Below are positions 6,102 through 10,700 of a DNA stretch of 32,000 nucleotides, piece after piece (the stretch's first letter is position 1; the number at the start of each line of letters is the position of its first letter). The stretch lies in NCBI GenBank assembly GCA_000002455.1, contig DQ158856.1, forward strand, positions 60,001 through 92,000. Reading direction: 5' to 3'. Under the pieces are notes generated by a model. It did not search any database. It was not told where the DNA came from and was given only the letters and a program-made list of their open reading frames with translations. The position numbers and the translations under genes are program-made. The DNA comes from Bigelowiella natans nucleomorph (lineage: Eukaryota; Protista; Cercozoa).

Positions 6102-6779
6102 AATGTATAATAATAAATAATTTTTAAATAGTATTCTTCCAATCTATAAATTTAATATCTATTAACAAATTATAATTCAATGAATCTTTATCAGAAAATA
6201 ACAAATAGAGTAGATACTAAAAAATGATAAAAAATCTAAAGAGTTAGTCATAGAATTACTATACAAGAAATTAGATTAAGGATTTTAATGATGCAAAAAA
6301 ATTTAAATATCAACAAAACTTTAGTTAAAATAATAATTATAAATATATAATAATATATTAATAAAAAATTTATAATGAATCGAGAAACGATTGATCAATT
6401 TTTCTATTCTTAAACTGATTAAAACCATGAGTTATAAATGATAGCATGGACGTATGAAAATGTAAATAATTCTAAACTATTAAAGGTACTTTGTATGTGA
6501 GTATAAAAAACATGCTATATATTTTTAAAAGTTCTGAGATTTGATAAACAACAACAAGACAAGGCAGAATATAGCATACCAGAAGTAAATAAACTTCATT
6601 ACATTCTGCGGACTGAGCAAACATATGTATAGGTAACCAACGCTTTTCACTATCAATGTTGCGTTCTATTACAAAAGTTATTGTATGAATGCTGTAACTT
6701 TATATGCCAAATAGCATGGATGTTAGAGATATTGAATGAAAAAATTCTCATTTCTTTAAAATAAATGCATGAATTTCTA

Positions 6780-6857
6780 AAACCTCAGTTGGATATTCAT
6801 CATTGGTTTAATGTTACAGGAAAAAACAACTACTATGATCCTTTAAAGTAAGGTCGT
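6780..6857 (-). ncRNA. U3: U3 snoRNA, apparently miniaturised (~78 nt)
   Basis: Minus strand reads ACGACCTTACTTTAAAGGATCA (GAC box, box A', box A; plant U3 begins ACGACCTTACTTGAACAGGATC), then AAACC-A-ATGATGA-8nt-CTGA-GGTTT (C'/D kink-turn with a 5-bp closing stem). Confidence 0.8.
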
Positions 6858-6919
6858 AATTATACATATGAACTAAAGTCAACAACTAGCTTTTAGAATT
6901 ATAAATATTTACTATAAGC

Positions 6920-7324
6920 ATGACTTTCCCTACATACATAGTGATTTATATTATCGCTTTTAGTAATAAACTAATTTGTTTTTTAATGTATAATTTTTTA
7001 AACTTTCTTTTTACTTCGGTATTAAAGTACTTTGGTTTTTTTTCTTGTCCTAAAAAAAATAAAAAGACCTATTTTAATAATAATCTTAATTCTTTTCCTT
7101 ATACTTTATTTTCAATCAGTTTTATATTTATTTTTATATATTTTATTAATTGCACTAATGCATTGCTCTGTTCTTTTAATATGGATTCTTTCGATCGAAT
7201 TTTAATTATTAATTCTTTAATGATTTCCTATTTAGAACTAATCTCTCTTTATTTATTGTATAACTTATCAATTGATACTAGATTATTGAAAAGATTCAAG
7301 AAAAAACTCATCACTTATTATTAG
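6920..7324 (+). CDS. Possible hypothetical protein; strand ambiguous
   Basis: 134-aa hydrophobic ORF in the track. The minus strand also has intron-like elements (e.g. 7050-7068), so the true gene may be antisense. Confidence 0.25.
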   Translation: MTFPTYIVIYIIAFSNKLICFLMYNFLNFLFTSVLKYFGFFSCPKKNKKTYFNNNLNSFPYTLFSISFIFIFIYFINCTNALLCSFNMDSFDRILIINSLMISYLELISLYLLYNLSIDTRLLKRFKKKLITYY

Positions 7325-7746: not shown

Positions 7747-10700
7747 TTATTGATCATAGACTTTTCTTACGGATACTTTTCCAGTCCCAGTTGTTATTTT
7801 TGTACCTGTAAAAATATTACTCGCTACTGATTCATTACATTCAATAGATTTATGAGCTATACTTTTTCTAAGATTTTTCCAATTAGATTCAAAACTGATA
7901 TTATGGAAAAGTGAATCTGATATATCTAAAAAATTTCTTTGCATTCTAATTACAAAACCCTAAAATATTTTTAGTTACTTTAAATGTCATATAACTACAA
8001 ATAATTTTAATGTGTATTTTATTAATTTTAATATTTTGATGGCTAATAGTGTTTAATATATTCCAATATATTAAATTGTAACATGATTCAATACCGAAAT
8101 AGTAACGATGATTATTAAGTTTATGAAAAGTACTACAGTTTAAGGAAATAAACTTCAGTTTTTTGATAAAACAATTAATACTAATACCTTTAGTTATCAA
8201 AAAAAAGCAAGATGCTTTACTATCTACAATAGCAGAAGAATTAGTCAGTTTTTTACTACCATATATTTTTTCATTTAAAAACTTGCTGTTACCCATAGTT
8301 AATAGTGACATGTTTGTTTTATTATTGTTTTTCACTGTTATTGTTATACTTTTACTCCTATAATCAATAAAATATCTGAATTTTATTGATGAGATAGTTC
8401 TTTGGATTAATTTTAGTAGAGGTACTTTATAGATTAAATTTATCTTTTTTTTCAATGATTTTCTATAATTTAAGAAATAATTGGAAATTCGATGTATATA
8501 GGGTTTCTTGTATTCTTGTTTCGAATATTTATAATAGAGTACTTTAAATATTAATTTGATAATGCGTTTAAATATAGTTTTTGAAAGTTTTAAAGATAAA
8601 TTATAAATATTTAGTCTTATTCTTTTTACAAATTTTCCAATATTGACGATCTGAAATGAATTACTAATAAGAATACTTGAAGAATTTATAGACTTCACAG
8701 AAAAGATAAAATCCATCATTGATATTGTATTTAGTGTAAAATTTCTATTCAATAGAATATTAAAAGAATCTTTATAATTATATATGCTTCTGTTTAGTTT
8801 TAATGCTAGCATTGGAATTTTTTTTGAATGAATATATAAGCCTTGAACTAATTGAACTAGATAAGGGATTCCTCTATTAACTCCTTCATTAACTATGCCA
8901 GTATTATGAAAAGTATTTAGAGTCATCTGAGTGAGTGGTTCACCTATGCTTTGGCCACACAAAACACCTAATGGACTAAAACATGCAGTTTGTTTGGCAC
9001 GACTTATTATTAGAAAATTGTAGATCATGAGCATAAAGTAGAAATTAAAAAAGTTTAAATTGTTCAGTTTCTTTGAAGAACTATAAAATTTATACGAATT
9101 GCTCTTAAAATAAAAGTTAAACAAATTCTGATGCAATTTTGATAAAGTAAAAGTTTGATAGAAGTTTACAAAATATTTATTGAAGGAGATTTCATCGTTG
9201 AATGTTACTTTCCCATTTGTAAAGGTTCTATTAAGATATCTATGCCATTTTTTAATTAAACTAAATAACGAATATATATCGAGTTTTTGCTTGCAATAAT
9301 TATTTTTCAAGAATTGTAATACTCTTCTAAACTCATTGTACTGATTATCATTAGGCTTCATGATTACATCTGAAACGCTGTAATAATAAAAATCTAAAAT
9401 TTCTTTATTGATTGAATTTCTAATTGTAGCATCATTTTCTAAATATAAATTCTCAAGCATTTTTATCAACGATCTCTGTAAATATCCAGATCTACTTACT
9501 TTAGTTGCGGTATCAAGAAGTCCCAATCTTCCTGATAAGGTATGAGCAAAAAATTCAAAATTCGATAATCCTAAAAGATAATTTCCAAAAATGAAATTAT
9601 TCACAATTCTATTAATATCTATCATGTTGCGCAAATTAGGATACAATGAAAGTTCTATACGACCCATGAAAAAAGTTATTAAAAATATATTTCTTTCAGA
9701 ACCTTTAGCACCAGCTTTTACCATGTTTAATAGGGAATTTGAAGATGTTTTTCTTTTGTATATCTCCTCTTTAAATTTATTTTTGCTAAATAATAATAAC
9801 TTATTTTCCAGACCTTTCAATTTTAATATTATCCTTTCCTCGTTATTTTCTACTAATGTAACAAATTTCGATGAAAAGGTTTTAAATACTCTTGTGTAAC
9901 AATAAAATGAATTTTTATATCTAATAAGTCCATTTTTAAAATTATAAAAAAAAGATGACAAAAAATCTCTTTTATCATTCTTAAAAACTAAGTCATTAAT
10001 TCCAAAAGTAATTCCAATTTTTGATGTCATTTTATATAACAAGTGTGAAAGTTTATTTACAAATATTGAATAATTTATCTGATTGGTGCTTTGCTGAATT
10101 TTATTAAATAATTTATTTGATTTAAAATCATAAGAATCCAAAATTCCATTTGTAATTTCTCCATTGTTTACAATGATTGCATTTTTTTCATTTGGAAATA
10201 AGTCAAAAGCTAACTTTTTATTAAGACTTTTTTTGAAATATAATATTCGTTTTTCATTTAATGAAATATTACAGTCTAATAATAAAAAATTAATAATCTG
10301 TAGGCCTGTAAAATAGCCTTTTTTAGTGTTTCGTGAGTAAATAATTGGTTTTAGTTTTTCAACATTAGTAATTTCTGTTGCGCAATAAATTTTACTCACA
10401 TCTGTAAAATCAATAAAAAAGTCTTTAAATGTTAAAATTCTAAGCATAACCAGGTTATCTTGAATTAAGTTTCTCATTAGAGAACTATCTTTTGAACTTA
10501 CATTATTAACGTCAGCAAAAGTTAAAAAAGTTGACTCGGATTTAGATTCATAACCTCTAATTACGTGAAAGTTTATTTCATCTCCATCAAAATCAAGATT
10601 ATAACTTTTACAATTAATGTAGTTCATTTTTATCGTGTGATCCGTACTAATTAATTTAATTTTATGTGATAATAAACCTAAGTTATGTAAAGTTGGTTGT

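Follow-up and report, generated by a model that had tools for sequence, protein, structure and literature searches.

A candidate miniature U3 snoRNA gene lacking the B/C motif in the Bigelowiella natans nucleomorph

Could a 78-nt element that begins like plant U3, but has only a short loop in place of the whole B/C domain, be the U3 snoRNA of the Bigelowiella natans nucleomorph? The B/C motif and the protein Rrp9 count as essential to the U3 snoRNP and as part of its core. Three contigs, bearing telomere repeats and subtelomeric rDNA, make up the 372,870 bases of the nucleomorph genome. The DNA examined here (the window) is a 32,000-nt stretch of chromosome 1 (60001-92000), and coordinates refer to this window unless prefixed otherwise. 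The candidate lies inside it on the minus strand (6857→6780). All of the motifs quoted in a preliminary description of the locus are present; the strand, which that description did not give, is the minus strand. The element and its parts are as follows:

6780..6857, minus strand: putative gene for a miniature U3 snoRNA, 78 nt long, or 79 nt if the fourth U of the 3' U-run is counted; ends predicted
6845..6856, minus strand: GAC box plus box A' (U3 nt 2-13), forming a predicted 11-bp helix III with the nucleomorph's own 18S 1160-1171
6855-6853, minus strand: GAC sequence motif
6850-6846, minus strand: A' sequence motif, UACUU
6837..6842, minus strand: box A core AGGAUC (U3 nt 16-21), forming a predicted 6-bp helix II with own 18S nt 10-15
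6826..6834, minus strand: 3' strand of a candidate weak 5' stem-loop with nt 1-5 and 8-11 (-3.2 kcal/mol)
6826-6821, minus strand: T6 (U6 run)
6810..6825, minus strand: short hinge of ~16 nt, overlapping the U6 run
6805..6809, minus strand: AAACC, 5' strand of the terminal stem; contigs of a second strain have one A fewer
6797..6804, minus strand: box C', a 3-nt bulge AAU and then GAUGA; position 2 of the bulge is a purine, as in canonical box C
6789..6796, minus strand: 8-nt loop in place of the whole B/C domain
6785..6788, minus strand: box D, CUGA
6780..6784, minus strand: terminal stem 3' strand, GGUUU

We compared the element with known U3 sequences. Nucleotides 1-12 are identical to the Rfam Plant_U3 consensus at 12/12 positions, which bears out the match to the plant U3 5' end given in the preliminary description. 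This plant-U3 12-mer is present in a single copy in the whole genome, and there are no copies with one mismatch. The Rfam U3 models, which had been proposed as a check, did produce an alignment at relaxed thresholds, with all scores far below gathering (16.4/55, 8.4/34, and 7.2/80 bits across the three models). The first of these values, with an E of 1.2, belongs to ACEA_U3, whose alignment spans model positions 1-209 but skips the middle, and whose consensus is similar to the sequence around C'; the last belongs to Plant_U3 (RF01847; 7.2 bits versus a cut-off of 80). An Rfam scan of the element at the gathering level gave no match.

We next examined the pairing of the element with the nucleomorph's own rRNA. 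The 18S starts at C1:1337, an anchor common to all six rDNA copies. In its 5' end (1337-1365), G9 and U25 replace the usual U and C, inside the U3-pairing region. Because the 18S departs from the usual sequence at these positions, the box A helix (helix II, with own 18S 10-15) is 6 bp rather than 7 bp, at -9.2 kcal/mol. Helix III as drawn in the older model, between GAC and the 18S 5' end, contains one G·U pair and is weak (-2.5 kcal/mol). The complementarity to the 18S 5' sequence that had been claimed for the element is thus correct for box A over 6 bp; the 7-bp box A pairing does not exist here, and the GAC pairing is weak. We then scanned U3 nt 1-14 along 7.1 kb of the nucleomorph's own pre-rRNA, and the best duplex was with 18S 1160-1171 (11/12 pairs, -14.1 kcal/mol). 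Because this segment lies immediately before the 3' strand of the pseudoknot, we take it to be the equivalent of yeast 18S 1111-1123. In the revised cryo-EM model, it is with yeast 18S 1111-1123 that the U3 5' end pairs (PMC7144924). The proposed check of the element against its own 18S therefore yields two predicted helices, helix III at 1160-1171 and helix II at 10-15. If the element is a U3, this would be independent support for the cryo-EM pairing over the older model, since the nucleomorph 18S weakens the old helix III and the new one is kept.

In the genome, 131 sites pair equally well with the helix III target, with RGGATC following in this one only. Ranked simply by the energy of its duplex with the 18S 5' end, the site does not stand out (rank 220). 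The helix I segment (UUUC, on the 3' side of box A), which follows box A in plant U3, is deleted in the nucleomorph element. Helix I is dispensable in yeast, where its loss has no clear effect (PMC7144924).

The second half of the element consists of the C' and D boxes. These follow the sequence rules of a kink-turn, with a 5-bp stem (AAACC/GGUUU), the bulge AAU, two sheared G·A pairs, a U·U pair, and a G-C pair, as predicted from sequence. The locus had been described as holding a textbook C'/D kink-turn with boxes 8 nt apart, and its sequence pattern agrees. Yeast C' has a U at bulge position 2 and binds Snu13 poorly (PMC5499572). The purine found here at this position is of the canonical high-affinity type and would suit an RNP with only one kink-turn. 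The whole 78-nt sequence folds no better than shuffles (z +0.89), and the U3 5' domain has an alternative short hairpin (-3.7 kcal/mol versus -3.2 for the 5' stem-loop).

No further CTGA occurs on the minus strand until 6194, 594 nt away, and the only C-like word downstream (6602) lacks the G of the first sheared pair. Of the preliminary description's statement that there is no box B and no other CTGA for hundreds of nucleotides, the part on CTGA is accurate; a box-B core word, AGUGA, does exist at 6651, but it falls beyond the terminal stem and has no box C or D that could serve as its partner. Because the B/C motif between C' and D is absent, we filed the element as a variant homologue of U3 (clan CL00100) and not as a canonical member.

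To judge how readily such an arrangement arises by chance, we used dinucleotide shuffles of the 203 kb of non-rDNA genome, with patterns defined after seeing the site. The number expected per shuffle was 0.033 for GAC/A'/A elements and 0.10 for compact stem-closed C/D motifs. Both motifs fall within 100 nt by chance at ~8e-7 (about 1e-6 per 200 kb), a figure that is generous because the patterns were chosen post hoc, with a margin that is still large. Neither half is convincing alone; for example, TGATGA..CTGA within 30 nt was found 18 times in the genome versus 17 in the control. Nonetheless, no other compact C/D motif in the 203 kb has a 5-bp stem, and this one adjoins the only plant-U3 12-mer. 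A separate TGATGA..CTGA pair, 30 nt apart and intergenic, lies just upstream of trnD (C1:24342-24381, plus strand) and is a possible small C/D RNA.

We also searched for a second U3. RF00012, Plant_U3, and ACEA_U3 run over the whole genome (three contigs) gave nothing above 9.4 bits, and in a whole-genome pattern scan GAC, TACT, and AGGATC occurred in order at this site only, outside the rDNA itself. A full-length U3 elsewhere would have made the element a fragment; three covariance models and the patterns found none, with chromosome 2 and the end of chromosome 3 covered by the model and pattern searches only. Outside this genome, ~33 kb of Lotharella oceanica and 20 kb of a second nucleomorph-like contig were scanned without finding a U3, and a metagenome pattern scan gave 120 chance-like matches, some on gut-metagenome contigs, none with both GAC and the stem. 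A full-text literature search for "U3 snoRNA" with "nucleomorph" returned no report; a mention in Marz and Stadler 2009 or Samarsky and Fournier 1998 is possible.

Transcript contigs from a second strain differ from the reference by 16 substitutions and one deletion over 1.64 kb. No substitution falls in a box, and the deletion removes one base pair, cutting the terminal stem to 4 bp. The complete lack of substitutions in the 78-nt element between strains is not significant (p 0.46). By comparison, 8/16 substitutions lie within 6665-6755, just downstream of U3 (p 8e-7), the most variable stretch between strains, and this clustering argues against a conserved 3' extension. Two further data sets are identical to the reference at the locus, T6 included. 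The unstranded transcript contigs run across the U3 locus and neither show nor exclude a discrete small RNA. They also define two short introns beside it:

6472..6489, minus strand: 18-nt GT-AG neighbor intron in the downstream same-strand transcript, removed in transcript contigs
6878..6896, plus strand: 19-nt GT-AG neighbor intron, removed in transcript contigs; it interrupts the divergent gene's leader (ORF 6920-7324)

Since contigs lack intron 6472-6489, there is a spliced same-strand transcript downstream of U3. The block 6370-6780 on the minus strand is transcribed and spliced, giving a 78-aa ORF (about 6624→6370) for which exon-by-exon searches found nothing significant and no family; the stretch 6400-6780 folds no better than shuffles (z +0.33). 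The spliced leader intron at 6878-6896 places the start of the divergent transcript upstream of 6878, within ~20 nt of the U3 start or overlapping it.

Pairing of the hinge with the nucleomorph's own 5'ETS had been proposed as a check, and 9-bp matches exist at C1:873 and C1:1069, competing for the same hinge bases; they are at chance level, as 107/200 shuffled ETS sequences were as good. Docking on the 5'ETS is thus conjectural. The hinge-5'ETS helices V and VI are essential in yeast (PMC7144924). The 5'ETS also contains, at C1:1226-1234, ~110 nt before the 18S, a UUGAUCCUG word like the canonical 18S 5' end. This word could pair over 7 bp with U3 box A; it also lies within a local hairpin and may be there by chance.

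For the proteins of the RNP, we relied on published gene lists and a scan of our own. Fibrillarin, a Snu13-like protein, and just one Nop56/58 are encoded by the nucleomorph (PMC6461891). The gene list compiled jointly for L. oceanica and B. natans contains fcf1, imp4, mis3, dip2, and tbl3 and lacks rrp9, imp3, mpp10, and sof1 (PMC4035089). Our WD40 matches were confined to two adjacent loci on chromosome 2, which is a lower bound given the limited sensitivity of the scan. Rrp9 is essential in yeast and required for A0-A2 cleavage (PMC7144924); in Giardia and two Plasmodium species it is reportedly missing (PMC3879963), so that its loss is tolerated elsewhere. The suggested independence of the nucleomorph U3 from Rrp9 is partly supported by these gene lists and the low-sensitivity WD40 scan, with which a diverged or imported Rrp9 would also be compatible.

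Collectively, these data lead us to regard the element as probably (at a probability of roughly 0.7) the nucleomorph's own U3 from the green-algal endosymbiont, cut down to a functional single-kink-turn, B/C-less RNP of ~78-80 nt. Its proposed identity as a U3 that has lost the B/C domain is supported at the DNA level by the pairing with the h27 region of the 18S, by the lack of any other U3, and by the boxes being kept in the second strain. Judging from the sequence, the 5' domain is able to pair with both 18S segments that U3 contacts in cryo-EM processomes (1160-1171 and 10-15), which are brought together at the central pseudoknot region. The helix I segment, which is dispensable, is deleted, and nothing is left of the domain between C' and D. 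Snu13 would bind the single C'/D kink-turn and recruit the single Nop56/58 and fibrillarin, which would stabilize the RNA. The 5' domain could then chaperone early 18S folding and position 18S 5'-end cleavage, carried out by Fcf1/Utp24 together with Imp4; the processome would be a stripped one that has no B/C-Snu13-Rrp9 module. Less securely, no more than a single short helix in the hinge may remain for docking on the 5'ETS, and the 3' end may arise by trimming of a read-through transcript back to the protein-bound terminal stem. The fuller proposal, that a natural ~78-nt U3 functions with neither the B/C motif nor Rrp9, pairs little or not at all with the 5'ETS, and forms the RNA core of a minimal SSU processome through two 18S helices, is tentative, and we put its chances at a little under even.

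Several alternatives were weighed against this reading. It is unlikely that the element is a decaying relic, a nonworking gene that has lost its B/C half while 18S processing relies on a host-imported U3 snoRNP or proceeds without U3. RNA import has been proposed on the grounds that several expected RNAs are missing (PMC6461891), hinge-ETS pairing is not detectable, and the terminal stem is weaker in one strain, all of which a relic would accommodate. On the other hand, the deletion is clean and has left each functional box whole, and the 5'-domain segments that were lost are those dispensable in yeast. Proteins are only 33-52% identical between genera in this genome, so unselected words should decay quickly, which argues against a relic. 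We consider it quite unlikely that the mature U3 is longer (150-250 nt) and extends past 6780, with a B/C-like module, divergent or appended at the 3' side, occupying the ~150 nt ahead of the downstream ORF. Nothing accounts for the ~150 nt that separate 6780 from the first in-frame ATG (near 6624), the box-B core at 6651 falls among them, and transcript contigs cross the locus without strand information. Against such a module, the D box and terminal stem close at 6780, CUGA is absent for 594 nt, the C-like word at 6602 lacks the G of the first sheared pair, and the downstream stretch is the most variable between strains and folds no better than shuffles.

A split U3, in which this RNA gives the 5' domain and C'/D and a second small RNA gives the B/C kink-turn in trans for an imported or unrecognized Rrp9, is very unlikely. 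We know of no precedent for a B/C motif supplied in trans, and the 8-nt loop has no apparent complementary handle. Such a partner could be sought among the five orphan C/D-like sRNAs reported without convincing targets (PMC6461891), and the essential role of Rrp9 in yeast (PMC7144924), with a WD40 scan that is a lower bound, would favor its retention; the loss tolerated in Giardia and two Plasmodium species (PMC3879963) speaks against that need. Most improbable of all is that the element is simply a C/D guide for methylation, or that its words came together by chance in AT-rich spacer DNA. The element has weak Rfam matches to several C/D families, and TGATGA..CTGA pairs are as frequent as in the control. 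Guides, however, have 10-21 nt of antisense upstream of D or D', whereas the 8-nt loop is too short and has no 7-8 nt complement in the nucleomorph's own pre-rRNA, so the element is not a methylation guide; chance fits poorly with the only compact 5-bp-stem C/D motif in 203 kb lying beside the only plant-U3 12-mer.

Read as a miniature U3, the element can be set beside known systems. It shares with plant U3 (RF01847) the first 12 nt, the AGGAUC box A core, and a 5' stem closing on the same end, which fits the green-algal origin of the nucleomorph; unlike the 221-position plant model, it has 78 nt and lacks the upper 5' stem, the helix I segment, and the B/C domain. The U3s covered by ACEA_U3 (RF01848; trypanosome 143 nt, Euglena 180 nt) are likewise compact protist U3s with a similar C' region and terminal stem, but ~105 model positions between C' and D are reduced to a short loop in the nucleomorph element, which has roughly half as many nucleotides as the trypanosome RNA. 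All four boxes (C', B, C, and D) and two kink-turns are retained in Euglena U3 (PMC2784804), whereas the nucleomorph element has one kink-turn. Protist U3s cited in the same work are 143-180 nt long (PMC2784804), 143 nt being the shortest U3 we found cited, and microsporidian U3s keep a loop with box C (PMC5832005). Yeast U3Δ2,3,4 is a viable engineered U3 without the peripheral 3' hairpins (PMC5499572); it keeps the B/C motif and Rrp9 binding, while the nucleomorph element is without the motif.

The element also resembles the orphan sRNAs BnNM-R9 to R12, which come from the same genome and have C and D boxes, snoRNA-like length, and no assigned function; they were never identified as U3, which the study does not mention (PMC6461891). 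Five C/D-like nucleomorph RNAs were classed there as orphans, of which R11, one of the nucleomorph's most plentiful sRNAs, exceeded U6 in abundance in 5/6 libraries (PMC6461891). The candidate U3 may be one of these published RNAs. As a U3, it would partly answer a question from that 2019 study (PMC6461891), namely, what the C/D proteins bind without convincing guides. What is new here is a B/C-less U3 homologue, most likely functional judging from its sequence, in a nucleomorph. If this is true, a natural 78-nt U3 would show which parts evolution is unable to drop: helix III, helix II, and one C'/D kink-turn. Since covariance models miss this one, similar miniature U3s could hide in other reduced eukaryotes without Rrp9.

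The T6 run had been taken to argue against transcription by Pol III. That argument fails in this genome, where 8/12 tRNA genes examined, on chromosomes 1 and 3, have no run of at least four T within 25 nt downstream, none has T6, and the U6 gene end has no long T-run. Because most of the tRNA genes examined have no oligo-T terminator, oligo-T termination is apparently not the rule here. The published lists of Pol III genes contain rpc1, rpc2, and rpc10 only (PMC4035089), and transcription of the U3 by Pol II and by Pol III are both compatible with the data. The genes trnI and trnQ abut without a spacer in B. natans and L. oceanica (L275:3248-3482). Abutting tRNA genes and missing oligo-T terminators suggest read-through and processing.

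The neighborhood of the element includes the B. natans nucleomorph proteins SmD and rps17E; a search with rps17E gave no non-Bigelowiella homologue. A closer relative (JGI 3300017007; ~73-76% DNA identity) keeps the orphan gene-SmD order, and its SmD contig ends 113 nt past the gene. In L. oceanica and the second nucleomorph-like contig, RPA1 synteny breaks directly after RPA1. RPA1 itself has 1359 aa in the reference versus 1419 aa in other strains' transcripts (window 7747-7977, minus strand). A 19-nt intron near 7959-7977 is removed in a transcript contig, and the 65-aa ORF is therefore the last exon, encoding the RPA1 C terminus.
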